Positions 47,106 to 64,000 of a stretch of DNA of 64,000 nt are shown here, in pieces. Both the position numbers and the translations under genes were made by a program. Below the pieces are notes generated by a model. The model searched no databases, was not told where the DNA came from, and worked only from the letters and a program-made list of their open reading frames with translations. Every line of letters starts with the position of its first letter. Positions within the stretch are counted from its first letter, which is position 1. The DNA is from Trichosphaerium sp. ATCC 40318 (Eukaryota > Protista > Tubulinea). The DNA lies in assembly GCA_038496445.1 (NCBI GenBank), contig JALMLS010000471.1, forward strand, positions 124,001 to 188,000, read 5' to 3'.

Positions 47106-48653
47106 CAAAGTTGGTGTACGCAATATTAGCCTAACAGTTACTGAACTTAACTGGTAGAATGTGCAGTCGATTGTAGTATATTCGCAATACCCATAATTCT
47201 TCATGGAGGAGGCTACCAGCAGCTTTATTGCCAGTAACAAAGATAGACCTGTTTCAATAAAAGTAAATAAATAGCGAATAATATTCGCTAACCAAAAAGA
47301 ATATCTATGAAACTTAAAACCGTACAATACAAAGACACATGTTAATATCAAACAGTTTATACAACATAAATACTTACATGGAAAAAGGAGGATCACGGAG
47401 GGGTAGTGTACACAAGTGCCACAAATTATTATCTTCTTTTCAAGAAAAATACAAAATGGGTCCAAAAGACGCTAGCGTGCGTTCCAATCATCAAAGGGTT
47501 CATAAACCTACCTAATAAAGTACAGTACTACTGGTACATAAATGCACACTATCTCAAAAGTGTAAGAATTTCCGGTTAACAGAGAAACACAGAACGTAAA
47601 AAAAATTTGTTTCTTCACACGTGGTACGAAAAGCTATGTGTCTACTGACAAGTTTTTGGAGGAAGTACCTTTTATTTTTCCTTTAAAACCGACACCCATG
47701 TTGTTAAATACTTCGTTATAGACTAGCTGTGGATATATAAATAGAAGAGTGTCGTTGCGTTGATCACGCGATATCATTCCACATAAGCACAAAAAAAAAG
47801 AACGGGCATCATTAATGCGTATACTACGCACGTGGGTAAGTATTGAGCTTATTTTAGTTTTGTTTAAGAACGAGCCGTCTTTTTTTTTGTGTTTCCACTA
47901 CAGTGTGCACGTGAATGTACCATAAAGAACCAAAAACCGTCATAAAACAACATTTTTAGTATTTTTATGTTTTTCATAGCATTGGACTTCTATAGTGCCG
48001 TCTTTTTACCCGATCTGTAAACTTCGAAGCAATTGTATGTTGACGCTTTGACAATTCTACTTGGCTTAAACAGTGAAAAAGAGAACTCTTGAACTTCGTG
48101 TCTAAGTTGTTCATACATGCTTTTCCCTATCACCCTGATATACACGGTTACACAATAATAGCTACAAGTTCTTTGCTTTCGTCATCAGTGTTCAGAACTA
48201 ACAACGCACAGTGCTTGCAATATCAGGTATTGTCGGAAAAACAGAAGTTAAAAGAAATTCCATAGTGAATTGATTTTGGAAACATTTTAAAGCAACGCAC
48301 ATTTCTTTGTATACTGTAACAAGATACGTTTAAAACAAAAACAATTTTGTACGCTATTATTAAAGCATTTTGATTCGACACTGCCACAACGCAGCACCTT
48401 TATTACCATCTTTATTACAATACAAAATACAAAAAAATCACCATCTCCGAAATCAAGGTTAAAAAGAGGACACTGTTCCATCTGCATCAAAAGCTCACCT
48501 CCATAGAATGGATAATCAGCACATTGCAGCCATACCGGATCGCCACCAAGGATTTTCGTATCCTACGCTATCCTGTACTATTTTAACTTCGGTCAAGAAC
48601 TCGCAAAGTCCAGAGAAGTCACCAAGTTTTTTGTAAATCTTTGTATTGAGTCT

Positions 48654-51611: not shown

Positions 51612-52977
51612 TTATTCGGCCTTAGCCGCCTCTTGTTTTTTTTTTTCATCTGCTTTTTTATTTGCTTCCACGCGCTGTTTGGTTATCAATCCACAATCAC
51701 GTATTACTTGTTCCCTTTCCTCCTCGGAGTTACAACGTTCCACTACGTCTGTATGTCCTTTTTTGTAATGTGATCTACGGCTGTAAACTCTGATGAGCAT
51801 GTCACAAATCTCTTCTTTCGAATTAACATTCTGGATATAACCAAAGTAAGTCCCAGCACTGGAGAAAGCCAATACCAAGGTGTATTTCAAAATACCGTTA
51901 TCTAAAAGTGAGGTAGATTGTTTTATCTTTAACTGTGGGATAAACACATTGCTATTGCCACAGTTGAATTCGAAACTGGTTACTATGTTGCTTGTTTGCT
52001 TAGTGATATTGCACTGATAGTGTGATGCGTTTTTGGTTGGGAAATACACGGTAATTTCTTTGCGATGTTTACCACATGCTTGTGGAACGAATTTTTTCTC
52101 CTTATGTAATAATTTAGTTGGTCGGAATACGTTTGAATAATAACCATACTGTACTGGCTCTACATTGAGACAACATCATCGCAAAAATCCAGGTGTACAC
52201 AAGGGGTAAAGGGAAATTTTGCATTGCTTCTACTTACACATCAGTGGTTCTTACATAATGTTATGATTTTTGGCATACCTTTGTCTGTTGTGGACTTACG
52301 TGCGTTTACTTTGCTACACTGGTTTGGCTCAACGACCATATCATCGCTCATCACTGTGGCGGAATAAGATGGATTCTCAAAGCCGCGATATTTTGTAATT
52401 CCGTCGTATGGGTCTATTTCCATATGATCATTGTCAAAATGATCTACCACACGTTAGGTCTAATACTTGAATGTATTCCTTACCTCTAGCTTCGTTTTGC
52501 TGCGATGCCTGGAATTGTTCTATAATATCTGCAATTGCGTGGTTACCGAAGGAACGAGCTACCATTCGTAGAGTCTTATATTCGTAGTCTGACAAAAATT
52601 TGGTTCCTGTTTTTTTAAGTAAGACCGTAGACAACTAAATGACACTCTGTCATACCTGCGTTCAACAAACAAAGAACAATGTTTTCGTGGCCAATTTTAG
52701 CAGCTAAGTGTAGCGGTGTTTCCCCTTGTAGGTTTTGGGCGTTTATATCTAATCCAAGTCTCACAAGTTCCTCAACAGAGCGTTCTTTCCCTTTGTAAAC
52801 AGCGAAGTGCAGTAGTGTTTTTAACCCTATTTTTCGAATTAAACTAAAAGGGGGTTATGAACCCAACGTACGACTATCGGTATGGAGCTCAAGGTCTTCT
52901 CGGGGGTTCGATTCAACAATTTGCTCGATCTGTTGTAGATCTTCAAGCAGTATCGCCTCATTTGCATCTTTTCGCAT
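51612..52977 (-). CDS. Ankyrin-repeat protein, multi-exon; downstream part appears disrupted
   Basis: 'KTLLHFAVYKGKERSVEELVRLGLDINAQNLQGETPLHLAAKIGHENIVLCLL'; stop at 52241 precedes further coding-like sequence (51612..52049). Confidence 0.7.
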
Positions 52978-53026
52978 AGTTAATAGAAAGTATTGGCTGT
53001 TGTCGTACCCAGGCGCGCAATGCTCA

Positions 53027-53254
53027 TGTTAGTCACGTGATATGGTATAGTTAAAAACAACTTAAAGGCAAGCCGGTTCAGAAAATGCGTTCGAAAATGT
53101 GTGAACACGGTTCGCACCTGTTCGAAAAAAATTACTTATGTTTTTGTTAGTCACGTGATAGGTATAGTTAAAAACAACTTAAAGGCAAGCCGGTTCAGAA
53201 AATGTGTTCGAAAATGTGTGAACACGGTTCGCACCTGTTCGAAAAAAATTACTT
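53027..53254. promoter_or_regulatory. Divergent promoter containing a tandem duplication (about 118-bp period) with CACGTG and TTC/GAA motifs
   Basis: Lies between ATGs at 52977 (-) and 53292 (+); two near-identical copies at 53027-53137 and 53145-53254. Confidence 0.65.
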
Positions 53255-53291
53255 TTGTTAAACGTTCGCATCAAACGTACAACACGTCGTA

Positions 53292-56200
53292 ATGGCCAAT
53301 AACTATGGAGGTGGGGTAATACCCATTAACTACGGATCTTTTGATCAATATGCAAGCGTCAAGGGCAGCGACGCAATACATACATTTACAAATTTTTTTG
53401 GCAGCTGCTTTAACCCAGTCATGCAGTATCAAAACCCTCTTTATGTTACGCTCTTGGTAAGACTGCTAGTATTCTTAACACTTACGCGGGTTATGTAGCA
53501 GAAAGATGACTATTCATCCTGGTTAGCAAAGCTAGATTTTGTACCCGAGTTTAGCGACAAGTTAACTCTACGCCATAACGGGGAGACAATCAGTACGAAA
53601 ATTGTTTTTTTTCTGTTTTCTACGGATTTGAACGAATAGAACCGTATTTTTTTGAAACCTTTTTTTTCACTTTTTTGAAAGTCTCGTGACCATTTTGATC
53701 AAAATAGTTGTCTTTTCAGTACTATATCTGATTTTATTTTAGCTTCTGTTGATAAAAGGTTTAACAGAGATGGCGTGGCAGTGTTCGACAAGTTGCAACT
53801 GGGTACTCCGTTTGTTGGATTAACGCAATTAGTTGATTTCGCTTTTAAGGACTTGCTACTTCTGCAAACGGACATCGTGGGGCATCACGTTGCAAGTTTC
53901 GTTTTTTTGTATATGTACGCTTCTTTTTTAAAGATATTTTGATAAAACTAAGCGAAATAGAACGAAGCAGGAGGTGCAACGACTGCGAAAGAGATTAATA
54001 TCCAGGCTAATATGATATGGACAGGTTTGAAAAATACAAGTTAAAATTGTTTTATTTTAACAGACTCTATCGAAAGGACTATACCCAGAAATCAAAAGTA
54101 TTGCACCACACGAAATAACCGTAGATTTGGTAGAAAGAGGTTTACATACTAAAAGAAAAATAGCTTTTTACAAGTTGTGTAGGCGGTGCAATTATTGGTA
54201 CCGGGTTTCCGCCACCATCTAGAGTGTACTTTATAGATCAAAAGCTTGCCCTGCTGGACTATCAAACTGTAACCCACACTAGCTCAGAGTTAGTTCATCC
54301 CGTAGTAATGCCCGTAAGGGGAGAACCATGTACAATATTCGCAAGAGTGATGACATGTATGAAGTAATATTGTGATTACTTTACTGACGTATGTAGGTAA
54401 TGGCGCGAGTAATACTGTTCCCATACGCTACAGACGTTATGAAGATAGGAAAGCTAGCCAAGAATTAGACTACAGTACATCTTATCAGCAAGATGAGAAT
54501 GTTATTGCGGCGTTGAACAAACTAAATCAACACGATGGTTTTTCATATGAATACACGGTTGGTACCCTTGGTTTTGCCGGTGCTAACAGAAGTAAGTGTT
54601 TGGTTAGACTAGTCTTTTATATACTGACATGACTAGATGGTGACACCGCGTTACATTTTGTAGCAGCACATGGTACAGTTGAAGATGCAAAGAAACTATT
54701 ATCTGATGGAGCGTATCTTGAAGCTACAAATGAACGTGGTGATACACCGCTACTCTGGGCTTTGACAGCGCAAAATGAAGCTGTTATTAGTTTCTTGATT
54801 AAGCAAGGTTTGTTCAACAACTGTATGTTATGTCGTCTTATGATTACACAGGAGCATCTGCGGAAGCTAAAAACAAGGACTCTCTTACGCCTATCAAAGT
54901 TGCACAGATATATGGACAAACATTGGTTACAACAAAAGGTACAACTACATAAATAATAATTGTTTTACAAACGTTACTATCCCACTTGAATACCCTTCTC
55001 ACAACGCTAGAAAACGCCAATCTCGAACAGAAAATAGGGCACAGCGATGTAGGTAAAGCATTACTTGTTGCAGGTAAGTTCCATGTAGCTACTACTTGTT
55101 CTCACTTCTTTTAGCATATAAGGGGGACTGCGAAGTTGTCTTAAAATTAATCAACTCAAACGCAGCTATTGAAATTGTTGATGAAAGTGGATATACCGCT
55201 GTATTGCACGCAGGTAATGTAGCAAGATCGCAATCCTTGCCGTTTATTCACATTGGCTTTAGCAAAAAACGGACACGTTGACATTGTTTCATTGCTGATC
55301 AAAGCAAGTGCCAACATTGACGCTGCTACCAAAGACGGAAAAACAGCTTTAATACATGCAGGTAATATTACGAGATAACACAACAACTCTCACTACCGCC
55401 TTAGCGTTCAACGGACATAGAAAAATTGTTTCAATGCTGATCGAAGCAAGTGCCAACATTGACGCTGTTACCAACGACGGAAAAACAGCTTTAATACATG
55501 CGGGTAATGTAGCAAGATCGCATTCATATCATTTACTCATATTGCCTTTAGCTAGCAAAGGACACATTGACATTGTTTCAATGCTGATCAAAGCAAGTGC
55601 CAACATTGACGCTGCTACCAAAGATGGAAAAACAGCTTTAGTACATGCAGGTAATATTACGAGATAACACAACAACTCTCACTACCGCCTTAGCGTTCAA
55701 TGGACATAGCGAAATTGTTTCAAAGCTGATCAAGTCAAAGTCTAAGATTGAAGCTGATACAGATGTGGTTAATATAGGTATTTATCAATCGTAGCTACGA
55801 TCAATTAACCTATTGTAGACAATGAAACATTGTTTAATTATGTTTTGAAAGCGACTGGAGTTATTTTACCCACTTCAACACTGTGGCAAGAGTTTCTTCT
55901 TGTCATACTAATCAAAGTAATCTCTAATGAACCCAGATCTGTTGAATTGTTTGTTACTTTCTTGGAGCATGCTCCAAGTGGTCAACAATGTTACAAATTA
56001 TGGGAAGCGTGCGCTTTGTTGAGTAGATGTGGCCCCCAAGAATTGAAATCTAATCTTGAACAATGGCTAAAGTACTTGGTACAACATCAAGCTGATTGGT
56101 AATTACTAATCATTTTCAACAGCCAAAGTGTTCGTATTTTAATTTGGCGATGGAAAAAGGGATTTGTTCCTTAATTTGTACATTTGAGGCAAAGCTCATA

Positions 56201-58179
56201 CGCTCCCCGGTAAGTACAACAATTCCGTTAATTTAAATGACACTTATTAGGATTTTTGGTACTGTGATGGAAAGTTAATGCAAGGAATCTTGAATGACCT
56301 TCCAAATGATATGTGGAGTGCAATGGATAAAAGCGAATTCAAAGAAGAATTTTGCGATGCTGGTAGAGCGAATTTGTTTTTTTATTATTGACACTAGCTA
56401 AAATACTCGCAGGATTAAAAAGTAAAAACCCGTGGGAGTTAAATCCGCGATTGTATTTTTCGAACAACTGGCAAAGAGCACATACCACGTGAGTACTTAA
56501 TAATATATTTGTATGATTAACATGTTCTAAAGTGGTACGAGTCCAAAGGCTACACATTTTAGAACCTTGAATCTTCTGGATTCAAATGATAAAGTGGCTA
56601 AGAGGGAATTGGATATCCTTAGACAAGAGATGTCGAAAATGCACGGTTTTGAAAAATACAATCTTGTAGAAGCTACTCTTGTTTACAATGATACCTTGAA
56701 TGAAAGCTTTGGAAGATTCAACAGCCAATTGAAACAGAGGCACAGGTACCTGAGAGTTTATTACTAAATCAAACTAAACATAATAGACTGCTACCAAATG
56801 TGTTAAGTAAACAAGATTGGGAGAAAAACAATTATAACAAAACAATTTACAAAAAGTTTGAAGCCGTCCTGGAACAAAATAGTACTGATACCTATGACAG
56901 TTCTAATTACGTAATATTAAGTAAATCACAGACTATTAATTTGGCTTTTAGTTACCCGTCGCATTGATGGCCCATGGAACAACTGAAGAAGCTGCATACA
57001 GTATTGCAAAACTTGGTTTTGCAACTTTGTGTGTGTTGGATACTGGTTTCTATGGTCAAGGCATCTACTTCACAGTACGTACAAATAATATCACGTTCTA
57101 TTCACAGCTTTTTGTAGCGGAATATCCAATATGCTAGTTTACATGATTGTGGAAGAACCAAATACAAAACACTTATATTGAGTCTTGTCACTCCTGGCAA
57201 TGTTTACCCTGTACATAAGTAATAATTCATAGCTTTGTATTAACGATAACAAAGGTAAAGCCAGCTGACAATTTAAAAGGAAAGCCAATAAAACCAGGCT
57301 ACCAGAGTCATTACACATTGGTAGATCACAAGGGCAGACCTATCTCAGAACGTAAAGTCACTAAAGCAGTATGCGATGAGCTTGTTGTTGCACAAGGTAC
57401 ACTCAATGAAATTGTATCTACACTAAACATTTTGTCATCAGATGCTCAAGCTGTCCCTCGCTATATCATCAAACTTGCACGGAAAGAGGTTACAAGCAAA
57501 GCGAAAAATGAAAAAAAAATAGGCAAAGAGACAAAGAAAGGAGAAAGTAAAAAAACAATCAAAAAAAAAATAGACAAAGAGACAAAGAAAGGCGAAAGTA
57601 AAAAAATAGGCAAAGAGACAAAGAAAGGAGAAAGAAAAAAAATAATCAAAAAAAAAATAGATACAAACAAGGGAGGTAAAAAAATAGATAAAGAGACAAA
57701 GAAAGGAGAAAGTAAAAAAACAATCAAAAAAAGAAACCCCAAGAAAGGAGCTAAAACGACAAAGAAAGGCGAAAACAAACGAACCAAAAAACATCAAGAT
57801 AAAGATTCAGATGAATTCTCTGATTCTTTTGAAGACAATTATTTTAGTCTGCGGTACGACATTAATTGCATTTGGTTATCAGAACTTATACGCTACTAGA
57901 AAATTGTGGAATTCCTATGTGGACTCAAGTGATAAAAAGATACTCAATACCTCTCATGAAATAGAATTGCGAAAAGTAAAACGTAAAGTTGCGCAGCTAG
58001 AGCATAGCAATGCAACTTTACGTCAAACCGACACAAAGCAACGTCAATACACCTCACGACAGATTTTGAACTTATCACTAGCTGTCTCTAAACTACAAGA
58101 GAGCAATTCCATGCTACTTGCCAAAACAGCGTGGCTTGAAAGTATGAATGTAGGCAACTCCAACCATATAATAAACTAG
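53292..58179 (+). CDS. Multi-domain protein: N-terminal domain, IPT/TIG, ankyrin repeats, PARP-like ADP-ribosyltransferase, Lys-rich repeat, leucine zipper
   Basis: IPT 'PEIKSIAPHE...GGAIIGTGFPPPSRVYF'; ANK 'DGDTALHFVAAHG', 'DGKTALIHA'; ART 'AHGT', 'GFYGQGIYFT', 'DELVV', 'QAVPRYII'; heptad C-terminus. Confidence 0.75.
57487..57790 (+). repeat. Coding minisatellite (KKIG/DKETKKGES repeats)
   Basis: Repeated AAAGAGACAAAGAAAGG(A/C)GAAAG units; absent from the paralog at 62870-62920. Confidence 0.85.
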
Positions 58180-58333
58180 TTAGAAATGCAAAAATTCTAA
58201 TTTCTCTCATCGACTTTATTTCTATGATCCTATCAACTACATTTCTTTAGGGTTGCTACCCCCATGTCTTGTGAAGTTCAAGTATTAAACCGCAACTGGG
58301 TAAAAGTCATAAGCGGTATTCATTAATCAGATT

Positions 58334-58503
58334 CAACACTGCCACAAAGCAGCACCTTTATTACCATCTTTATTACAAAATACAAAAAAATCACCATCTC
58401 CGAAATCAAGGTCAAAAAGAGGACACTGTTCCATTTGCATCAAAAGCTCACCACCATTGAAAGGATAATCAGCACATTGCAACCACACTGGATCGCCACC
58501 AAT
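58334..58503. repeat. About 170-bp dispersed duplication of 48378-48549
   Basis: 'CACTGCCACAA...GGATCGCCACCAA' is shared at high identity. Confidence 0.85.
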
Positions 58504-60909: not shown

Positions 60910-61478
60910 TCAGCGTATTTCCATATCATTGTCAAAATTATCTACGCCACACGTTAGGTCTAATACTTGAATGTATTCCTTACCTCTAGCTTCGTTTTGC
61001 TGCGATGCCTGGAATTGTTCTATAATATCTGCAATTGCGTGGTTACCGAAGGAACGAGCTACCATTCGTGGAGTCTTATTTTTGTTGTTTAACAAAAACT
61101 TGGTTTTTCCTGTTTTTTTATGTAAGACCGTAGACAACTAAATGAACTCTGTCATACCTTCTTTCAACAAACAAAGAACAATGTTTTTGTGGCCAATTCT
61201 AGCAGCTAAGTGTAGCGGTGTTTCCCCTTGTAGGTTTTGGGCGTTTATATCTAATCCAAGTCTCACAAGTTCCTCAACAGAGCGTTCTTTCCCTTTGTAA
61301 ACAGCGAAGTGCAGTAGTGTTTTAACCCCTATTTTTCGAATTAAACTAAAAGGGGGTAATGAACCCAACGTACGACTATCGGTATGGAGCTCAAGGTCTT
61401 CTCGGGGGTTCGATTCAACAATTTGCTTGATCTGTTGTAGATTTTCATTGGGTATTGCCTCATTTGCATCTTTCGCAT
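60910..61478 (-). pseudogene. Truncated duplicate of the ankyrin gene (1-nt deletion just after ATG; lacks the downstream part)
   Basis: High identity to 52430-52977; ATGCGAAAG versus ATGCGAAAAG; could be a homopolymer error. Confidence 0.6.
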
Positions 61479-61573
61479 AGTTAATAGAAAGTATTGGCTG
61501 TTGTTGTACCCAGGTGCTTAAAGCTCATATTGCTTGCGTGATGGTATAGTTAAAACAACTTTAAGGCAAGCCG

Positions 61574-61586
61574 TTCAAGAATTTTC
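61574..61586. promoter_or_regulatory. Canonical three-unit heat shock element (TTCaaGAAttTTC)
   Basis: Exact TTCnnGAAnnTTC match in the divergent promoter; function not shown. Confidence 0.4.
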
Positions 61587-61723
61587 GAACAGTGTATGTG
61601 AACCTGTTCGAAAATATGTGATCCTGTTCGAAACGGTTCAAAAATGTGTGTGAAAACGGTTCGCACATGTTCGAAAAAAATTACTTTTGTTAAACGTTCG
61701 CATCAAACGTACAACACGTTGTA

Positions 61724-63271
61724 ATGGCCTTTAAATATGGAGCTTTTGATCGATATGCAACCGCCAACGAGGGTAGCGACGCATTAGAAATAAGCACAAA
61801 TTTTGCTGGCGACCGCTTGAACCCAAACACTCACAGTTGGGATAGATATCAAATCACGTGCGTATATTAATAGTATTGTAAAATTAACATGTGGTTATGC
61901 GAAAAGTGGTGCAGGTCCAAAGGCTACACAGTATAGAACCTTGAATCTTTTTGATGCAAATGATAAAGTGGCTAAGAGGGAATTGGAGATCCTTAGACAA
62001 GAGATGTCGAAAATGCACGGTTATGAACAATACAATCTTGTAGAAGCAACTCTTGTTTGCAACGATACCTTAAATGAAAACTTTGGAAGATTCAACAGCC
62101 AATTGAAAGAGAGGCAAAGGTACCTGAAAGTTTATTGCTAATATAAACTAACTAAACATGACAGAGAGGAACCAAAGCTGTTCTGCAAACACCATTGGGA
62201 GAAAAACGATTATAATAGTACAGTTTACGAAAAGTTTGAAGCCGTCCTGAAACAAAATAGTACTGATACCTATGACAGTTCTAATAACGTAATATTATGT
62301 AATTCACAGAGTATTAATATGGTTTTAGCTACCTATCGCATTGATGGCCCATGGAACATCAGAAAAAGCAGCGTACAGTATTGCAAAACTTGGTTTTGCA
62401 GCTTTGTGGACAGAAGATGCTGGTTATTATGGTCAAGGCATCTACTTCACAGTACGCACAAAACAATATGGCATCCTATTCACTTTGTATTTTCCACTGT
62501 AGCGGAGTATAAAGTATGCCTGTTCATATGACCATCCAAGAACCAAATACAAAACACTTATTTTGAGTCTTGTCACTCCTGGCAATGTTTATCCTGTACA
62601 TAAGTAACAATTATATCTTTGTATTAATGATCACAAAGGTAAAGCCAGACGACAATTTGTACGGAAAGCCAATAAAACCAGGCTATCAGAGTCATTATGC
62701 ATTGGTAGATAGGAAAGGCATACCTATCACAGAAGATAAAGTCACAGGAGCTGTATACGATGAGCTTGTTGTTGCACAAGGTACACTCAATGAAATTGTA
62801 TCACCTAAACATTTTGTCATCAGATGCTCAAGCTGTCCCTCGCTATATCATCAAACTTGCACCAAAACCGTTCAAGCGTAAAAAAACAAAAAAGACAAAG
62901 AAAAGGAAACAAACTAAAAAAGATCAAGCACCAGAAACGGCTAGCACAAGTTCAGATGATCTCTCTGATATTGAAGCTGACGATTTTAGTACTAAGCGGT
63001 ACAACATTAATTTCATTCTTTTGTCAGAACTTATATCGCTACTAGACAAATGTGGGATTCTCATGTGTATTCAGCTGATGAGGAACAATCGAGAGACAAT
63101 GCCACTCTTGCAATAGTGCAAGAATCAAACCATGAAGTTGAGAAACTAAAGAAGAGCAATGGAAAATTAAAAGAATACATTATGAACTTATCAAAAACTG
63201 TCACTATCCTACAAGAGAGTAATGCCACGCTACTTGCCAAAATAGCGCACCTTGAAAGTATGGTCAAGTAG
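61724..63271 (+). CDS. Compact PARP-like ADP-ribosyltransferase with C-terminal leucine zipper (short paralog)
   Basis: Exon 1 splices in frame to the ART region; 'AHGTSEKAAYSIAKLGF', 'GYYGQGIYFT', 'YDELVV', 'QAVPRYII'; 'LSKTVTILQESNATLLAKIAHLES'. Confidence 0.8.
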
Positions 63272-64000
63272 CTTCAATGTAGGCAACTCCAATCAATAAT
63301 AAACTAGTTAGAAATGCAAAAATTCTAGTTCCTCTTACCGCCCTTATTTCTAGGATCCTAACTAGAGTGAGTATGATAACACATAAAAAAGATTTTAAAA
63401 TGATAATAAAATACTGTTTGTGAAGTAAAATTGGTTGAACGGGCAGCACAGTTTTTGCACAAAGTTTACAATTTGTCAAAATTGTAGAAATTCGCAAATT
63501 TGCTACTTTTACTGCATATTATGGAATCTTTACAATGCTATTTCTCATCAATGCAATCATTGTTGTACTATTGATAGTGCCTCATAATATAAAATATACT
63601 ATAAAGTACTGTGAAGTAGTGAGAAATTATTTCGTTAATGCAGTGGTGAGAAAAGGTATTGCCAGTGCTGCCAATTTATTTTTTACCTTGTAATTTTAGG
63701 TATTTTCGCAAATTCTCTAATTTTAGGCAATTAGACAACCTCTCGTTCTCCTATTCCTACTCATTCATATTAAGAAACCTTACACAATTGAGAGGAAGAC
63801 TACAACGTCTAGTGGCTCTAGCGCAGCCCTTGATGTTGTTGTTTACTAGCCAACAAGAACATACAAGTTTAAGTGCATTACATGATAAAATTTTTAAATC
63901 CTCGTAATTGGAATTTCAGTATTTAGGGTGGGTTTGTGGGTTTCGTTTGATTCGCTGCTCGCCATCGTTAATCGTGTGTTACAATTCTATTTGTTTCAGA

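Follow-up and report, generated by a model that had tools for sequence, protein, structure and literature searches.

Proteins that combine ankyrin repeats with a PARP catalytic domain are known from several branches of the PARP family. Tankyrase (PARP5a/b, PARP clade 4) has N-terminal ankyrins, an oligomerising SAM domain and a PARP domain with an H-Y-E catalytic triad. The ankyrin repeats of tankyrase number 15–18 (PMC2964712), and the combination of ankyrins and PARP has had several independent origins (PMC2964712, PMC4245714). The clade 1A ankyrin PARPs of protists and invertebrates, such as Dictyostelium ADPRT3 and Caenorhabditis elegans PME-5, likewise begin with ankyrins and have a catalytic domain preceded by WGR and PRD. 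PARP12, PARP10, ZAP and PARP15 (PARP clade 3) have H-Y-I/L/other triads and are mono-ADP-ribosyltransferases. Outside the PARPs, an IPT/TIG domain followed by ankyrins is found in NF-kB p105/p100, CAMTA and Spt23/Mga2. Here we describe a gene in a 64,000-nt stretch of DNA from the protist Trichosphaerium sp. ATCC 40318 (contig JALMLS010000471.1, positions 124,001–188,000 of the forward strand; the whole stretch is called the window, and all coordinates refer to it). The gene, copy 1, lies at 53292–58179 on the + strand, and a tandem paralogue, copy 2, lies at 61724–63271 on the same strand. The predicted product of copy 1 has eight ankyrin repeats, preceded by a probable TIG domain; these are followed by a PARP catalytic domain, divergent in sequence and with the H-Y-E triad retained, and by a leucine zipper at the C-terminus. 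The succession of TIG-like domain, ankyrins, PARP and C-terminal zipper is a new architecture within the known PARP family; a literature search gave no paper in which IPT/TIG, ankyrin and PARP catalytic domains are combined, and the architecture is not described in the surveys consulted.

Gene structure and catalytic domain

A stop-free spliced frame runs on the + strand from the ATG at 53292 to the TAG at 58177–58179, the same limits that an initial annotation of this DNA had assigned to the gene. The curated model contains 25 exons and encodes 1196 amino acids (3.6 kb of coding sequence) with no stop or frame break. The introns are 40–52 nt long in 21 of the 24 cases, 72 nt in two and 225 nt in one; all splice sites are canonical, and most introns have GTA at the 5' end, YAG at the 3' end and an internal branch-like YTRAY motif. 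The window as a whole is eukaryotic, protist-like DNA with approximately 37% G+C and very short introns. Since GT..AG pairs are frequent in such DNA, a spliced path alone is no evidence of a gene, and support was taken from the content encoded by the exons and from independent sequences. The N-terminal junctions were curated by hand, after automatic exon chaining had over-split or mis-joined the N-terminal exons. Judged by encoded content and by the comparisons described below, copy 1 is a real gene with 25 predicted exons, and its exons are established for the part that extends from the ankyrin array through to the stop.

The ankyrin array is encoded by exons 7–14 (54637–55777). Pfam searches with the exon open reading frames (ORFs) of copy 1 returned Ank (2e-08) and Ank_2 (7.9e-11), and eight repeats were read in the spliced model, in line with the ankyrins seen in the initial annotation. 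Each of repeats 4–7 corresponds to a single 99-nt exon; the exon of repeat 8 measures 84 nt, and all five are in phase 1. Tandem Repeats Finder detected ankyrin exon-plus-intron units with a period of 142–147 bp in tandem within 55210–55740, and the introns at 55362–55404 and 55651–55693 match each other across the stretches printed. Thus, the unit length, the shared phase of the exons and the matching introns indicate that the array grew by recent duplication of exon-plus-intron units. Variation among the near-identical repeats falls mainly on the residue pairs on either side of 'GH'; the pair preceding 'GH' occupies classic surface positions of ankyrins.

The ankyrins are connected to the PARP domain by a linker of approximately 180 residues, encoded by exons 15–18 (55819–56488). 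When the 86-residue linker exon was used as the query against 1.84 billion representative proteins, a 590-residue protein, P0001, was found; it lies on L001, a 2604-nt transcript contig from JGI sample 3300016894. The other match to this exon, P0002, was repeat-driven and was rejected as spurious. The linker and the N-terminal region of P0001 share 44–56% identity, and AlphaFold predicted low-confidence helices in this region of P0001. No Pfam domain was found in the linker, and no SAM in the linker exon of copy 1 or in P0001, so the contrast with the SAM of tankyrase that had been drawn earlier was borne out. The linker is a family-specific helical region.

The PARP domain, with ADP-ribosyltransferase (ART) fold, is encoded by exons 19–23 and the 5' part of exon 24 (56533–57488). 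Copy 1 was scanned with Pfam exon by exon only, and exon 56952–57134 alone gave a weak PARP match (E 0.0085, 16.1 bits; the gathering score of PF00644 is 26.7 bits), whereas P0001 passed this threshold with 30.9 bits. The spliced model of copy 1 is colinear with P0001 over 417 amino acids (56% identity), an alignment that spans nine predicted junctions and led to the correction of one acceptor of copy 1, to 57255. The structural check that the initial annotation had proposed was performed with P0001, a homologue of the window protein. AlphaFold gave a confident ART domain for residues 170–415, with predicted local distance difference test (pLDDT) values mostly of 70–90, and a Foldseek search of the PDB with this model placed the catalytic domains of tankyrase 1/2, PARP12, PARP10 and ZAP on top, at a probability of 1.00 and approximately 15% identity. 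By sequence, a profile of the family matched PARP12 best among the solved structures (E 1.9e-08), with PARP10 at 2.2e-06.

The positions proposed earlier for the catalytic triad agree with this alignment. The His lies in '..MAHGT..' (56973–56975), the Tyr in 'GIYFT' (57066–57068) and the Glu in 'DELVV' (57378–57380). In the profile alignment, HGT falls on the HGT of PARP12 and YGQGIYF on its YGKGSYF, and the Glu of 'DELVV' is found immediately ahead of the residues that pair with PARP12 'FVIFE', at the place expected for the third triad residue. The prediction that this divergent PARP catalytic domain keeps the H-Y-E triad is thereby confirmed at the level of the alignment. P0001 contained no WGR or PARP_reg match in Pfam, and ESM-Atlas leads to PARP_reg and ARTD15_N were faint (scores of at most 0.67).

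Relatives and the tandem paralogue

The transcript contig L001 carries ankyrins (seven or more repeats), the linker, the PARP domain, a basic/acidic tail and the zipper together. Its two called ORFs are split only by a run of 10 N (737–746) with 'catcat' on both sides, and the frames are open up to the gap; the run is an assembly artefact that divided one probable ORF into two called genes. P0003, a paralogue of P0001 from the same sample (53% identical), shows that the family is multi-copy there too. Only seven relatives were retrieved with P0001 from a collection of 5.8 billion proteins, and none of them belongs to this genome or contains a TIG. With the ankyrin ORF of L001 as the query, the matches were generic ankyrin proteins only, none with PF01833, and scans of metagenome contigs with a PARP exon of the window and with a P0001/P0003 alignment found no relatives.

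The introns of copy 1 that lead from the last ankyrin exon through the four linker exons to the PARP exons are 41–50 nt long and keep the phase. Copy 2 (61724–63271) is intact, with 8 exons and 409 residues in the gene model. By blastn, 60916–61825 is 82% identical to 52415–53417, 61855–62921 is 84% identical to 56486–57554, and 62951–63360 is 71% identical to 57806–58232. As these blocks and the alignment of the junctions show, copy 2 lacks the 3.07 kb corresponding to 53418–56485 of copy 1, and an in-frame fusion connects its exon 1 with the end of exon 18; what is left is an intact ORF consisting of exon 1, PARP, a short basic/acidic tail and the zipper. The presence of both ankyrins and linker in the transcript of the relative makes an origin of copy 2 by deletion the best reading. 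Because the introns are short and phase-keeping, the L001 transcript spans the modules and copy 2 is a clean fusion, we read the region from the ankyrins to the stop codon as a single gene. The colinear order of IPT-like domain, ankyrins, H-Y-E PARP and zipper in one spliced gene, as put forward in the initial annotation, holds, and L001 provides transcript support for it from the ankyrins onward.

It could be argued that the TIG-ankyrin part and the PARP part are two genes, or that exon 1 is spliced directly to the PARP exons in the main transcript, an arrangement like that of copy 2, and copy 2 indeed represents a viable unit of exon 1, PARP and zipper. However, introns as short as those of the linker, all keeping the phase, leave no space for a promoter or a terminator, and the TIG part is joined to the first ankyrin exon by an intron of only 45 nt. 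In addition, ankyrins and PARP occur together on the transcript of the relative, and the linker exons, which are missing from copy 2, are conserved in P0001. A division into two genes, or a predominant skipped transcript, is thus very improbable, the least likely of the alternatives weighed here.

The two copies of the single gene differ by a synonymous divergence (dS) of 0.21, and the ratio of nonsynonymous to synonymous divergence (dN/dS) is 0.56 in the PARP part and 0.8 in the tail, values that would mean weak constraint or diversification. Exon 1 evolves fast, with a dN/dS of about 2 against copy 2, calculated from few sites. At some PARP positions copy 2 is nearer to P0001 than copy 1 is; the stretch 'RSIKYACSYD' of copy 2 is identical to that of P0001. 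Alternatively, copy 1 might be a duplicate that is decaying or not expressed, with N-terminal exons free of selection and an apparent TIG left behind by exon shuffling. Such a decay would fit the high dN/dS values, the weak coding signal of exons 1–6 and the sites at which copy 1 departs from P0001 while copy 2 equals it. On the other hand, the 3.6 kb of coding sequence runs through all 25 exons uninterrupted, every splice site is canonical, and triad and zipper are intact. We consider decay of copy 1 improbable, and a functional gene remains the preferred reading.

The region upstream of the ankyrins and the C-terminal tail

Exons 4–6 (54077–54437; exon 4, 54077–54139; exon 5, 54183–54356; exon 6 from 54397) contain a segment of approximately 92 residues that spells the TIG pattern P-x-I-x-S-I-x-P, GG-x-I-I-G-x-GF, V-x-F and SN-x-V-x-I-x-Y. 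Weak GTTT donors are used at the junctions that form it, with normal intron lengths (52 and 43 nt, and 40 nt for the next intron) and correct phases. For exon 5, 85 of the 100 nearest ESM-Atlas clusters carried PF01833, at a score of 0.85 and a recognition value of 2205; the tool grades this score as a lead only, and its recognition mark is 2300. The pattern and the lead together suggest that exons 4–6 quite probably encode an IPT/TIG domain.

Upstream of the TIG, copy 1 has at most approximately 146 residues. The first 55 of these are encoded by exon 1 (53292–53456), which contains the start codon; copy 2, which has no TIG or ankyrins, retains both this ATG and the flanking sequence. The exon 1 donor is GTAAGA at 53457, and both the donor and the junction to exon 2 are uncertain, several junction options having been enumerated. 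Exons 2 and 3 (53682–53895 and 53968–54024) add approximately 91 residues that are specific to copy 1, and it was in this segment that the initial annotation had placed a putative DNA-binding sandwich of the Rel/STAT/p53 type. Held-out codon log-odds calculated for exons 2–6 ranked the chosen frame as the best of six for exons 2–3 and as the highest across exons 2–6, a modest support for coding, and this region contains 3 ORFs of at least 60 codons as against 0.9 expected (P 0.04). Exon 2 matched no Pfam family and no Atlas family, and its recognition value was low. A single-sequence AlphaFold prediction of exon 2 consisted of low-confidence helices with no beta-sandwich; the model is weak and neither supports nor refutes a sandwich.

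The RHD-N, STAT and p53 DNA-binding domains are approximately twice as long as 91 residues, the Rel-homology DNA-binding domain comprising some 170–180 residues with a recognition loop. Since exon 1 is shared with the TIG-less copy 2, only the approximately 91 residues of exons 2–3 are left for the proposed domain. A Rel-homology N-terminal domain was not recognised in copy 1, where no more than 146 residues precede the TIG and neither Pfam nor the Atlas assigned a family. Thus, with a segment of about half the size, no recognised family and an uninformative AlphaFold model, the proposal of DNA binding through a Rel/STAT/p53-like N-terminus is unsupported.

Downstream of the PARP domain, copy 1 continues with a lysine-rich low-complexity region (57489–57790). 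Tandem Repeats Finder showed that the lysine-rich stretch results from a recent expansion of 36/87-bp tandem repeats (57513–57732), found in copy 1 only; the stretch is short in copy 2, P0001 and P0003. It is followed by an acidic Asp/Ser/Glu patch (57791–57853) that closes exon 24 and is kept in these three sequences. The donor GTACGA stands directly after the patch, at 57854, and opens a 46-nt intron (57854–57899) that joins the frames; copy 2 has the same junction, and the joined sequence agrees with P0001/P0003 ('..RKLW..'). An apparent transmembrane segment ('MNSLILLK..', 57811 onward) was rejected as an out-of-frame reading through this intron.

Exon 25 (57900–58179, ending with the stop codon) encodes a predicted coiled coil with the leucine zipper. 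The last 30 residues of copy 1 contain L-x6-L-x6-L-x6-L at 58066–58146, with an Asn at a core position. The zipper comprises four heptads in copy 1; copy 2 and P0001 have six each, and P0003 has a zipper as well, so the leucine zipper noticed originally is conserved in four sequences. Pfam bZIP scores stayed under the cut-offs (bZIP_1, 18.1 versus 27.6 bits for copy 2; bZIP_2, 16.2–16.3 versus 22.3 bits for P0001 and copy 2), and the sub-threshold matches spanned only the zipper part of the models; copy 1 had no Pfam bZIP match. Upstream of the coiled coil lies an acidic stretch and not a basic DNA-contact helix. On account of the scores, their restriction to the zipper part and the acidic stretch, a bZIP identity was rejected. 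The C-terminal zipper is, as far as the sequences indicate, a dimerisation element with no recognisable bZIP.

These results bear on the view, put forward with the initial annotation, that the protein is a transcription-factor-like PARP. According to it, the N-terminus and the IPT would form a Rel/NFAT/STAT-like DNA-binding module, the zipper would dimerise on DNA, and the ankyrins would mask the module as in p105. In its favour, a TIG is probable, the protein has a dimerising zipper and a region rich in lysine, and the order of IPT and ankyrins is that of p105, CAMTA and Spt23/Mga2. However, the 91 or so copy-1-specific residues before the TIG are too few for DNA-binding domains of this kind, they match no Pfam or Atlas family, and no beta-sandwich is predicted for them, although the AlphaFold model is weak; at the other end, the bZIP matches are confined to the zipper at sub-cut-off scores, and the acidic patch separates the basic repeat from the coiled coil. 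This makes the transcription-factor-like PARP a highly doubtful explanation. The ankyrin-PARP protein is neither a Rel nor a bZIP family member. DNA binding by it has no support at present and is speculation, as is the transcription-factor-like label itself, since no DNA-binding domain family is recognised at the N-terminus and the zipper is not a bZIP; the present evidence reveals no new kind of transcription factor.

Comparison with known systems and working model

Tankyrase resembles copy 1 in its ankyrins, oligomerising element and H-Y-E PARP domain, and its catalytic domains head the structural matches to the P0001 model. Unlike tankyrase, copy 1 has no SAM and instead carries a leucine zipper after the catalytic domain; it has eight ankyrin repeats as against 15–18 (PMC2964712), and a TIG-like domain, a helical linker and a lysine-rich tail in addition. 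Only approximately 15% of residues are identical to tankyrase, and PARP12 and PARP10 score higher with the family profile. Because the SAM is absent, we place the protein outside the tankyrase clade. The clade 3 PARPs (PARP12, PARP10, ZAP and PARP15) provide the best sequence matches among solved structures, but the ankyrin-PARP family differs from them in keeping the Glu, and none of their zinc fingers, WWE or macro domains was found in P0001 by Pfam. The absence of WGR and PRD, neither WGR nor PARP_reg being matched in P0001, sets the protein apart from the clade 1A ankyrin PARPs. NF-kB, CAMTA and Spt23/Mga2 share the step from TIG to ankyrins; unlike in these proteins, no Rel-homology N-domain, CG-1, death domain, IQ motifs or membrane anchor was detected, and the C-terminal half of copy 1 is an enzyme.

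In the working model, one gene would produce a modular ADP-ribosyltransferase of approximately 1196 residues, with a short N-terminus that may be unstructured or of an unrecognised fold, followed by the probable TIG, eight ankyrins, the linker, PARP, the lysine-rich stretch, the acidic stretch and the zipper. The ankyrin array, and perhaps also the TIG, would recruit target proteins, the zipper would dimerise or oligomerise the enzyme, as SAM does in tankyrase, and the ART domain with its catalytic Glu would ADP-ribosylate the bound targets and itself. By analogy with tankyrase, whose logic it would follow, we lean on balance towards this reading of one modular ADP-ribosyltransferase gene.

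Several points weigh against it. Searches with single exons gave no significant Pfam hidden Markov model or PDB sequence match for the TIG, so that the IPT claim of the initial annotation, supported by the motif pattern and the Atlas lead, stands as probable only. L001 is 5'-incomplete and joined across the N gap of a scaffold, and is uninformative about a TIG in the relatives. The splicing of exons 1–6 and the presence of the TIG in the mature mRNA are inferred from the genomic sequence only. Finally, dN/dS values of 0.56–0.8 could equally reflect relaxed constraint, with one of the copies decaying.

The fast divergence of the copies and the duplication of ankyrin exons would fit a lineage-specific, adaptable recognition module, possibly related to stress or conflict. 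In an extended form of the model, TIG and ankyrins would be a variable recognition head and PARP and zipper an oligomerising effector, forming a protist sensor-effector system based on ADP-ribosylation. We regard this extension as rather unlikely, and a variant in which the head also binds DNA as less likely still. If the extension were true, the family would be comparable in logic to the rapidly evolving antiviral PARPs, and it would be remodelled quickly, by duplication of ankyrin exon units, by in-frame loss of the head, as in copy 2, and by divergence with dN/dS up to approximately 0.8. The locus shows a change of architecture in progress, since the tandem paralogues differ by the clean in-frame loss of the recognition half, and the pair is a natural experiment on the contribution of the recognition modules to an H-Y-E ART domain.

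Each PARP copy has a small ankyrin-repeat gene on the - strand in head-to-head orientation (52415–53000 next to copy 1 and 60913–61524 next to copy 2), and these neighbours were duplicated together with the PARP genes; the one beside copy 2 gave a Pfam Ank_4 match of 4.5e-12. In the shared intergenic region just upstream of the ATG of copy 1, presumably a promoter, a 117-bp unit occurs twice with 97% identity (53027–53259) and holds short 12-bp 'GTTCAGAAAATG' sub-repeats. Just downstream of the gene, at 58330–58400, a 76-bp stretch is 91% identical to 48372–48447 and is probably a fragment of a dispersed repeat.

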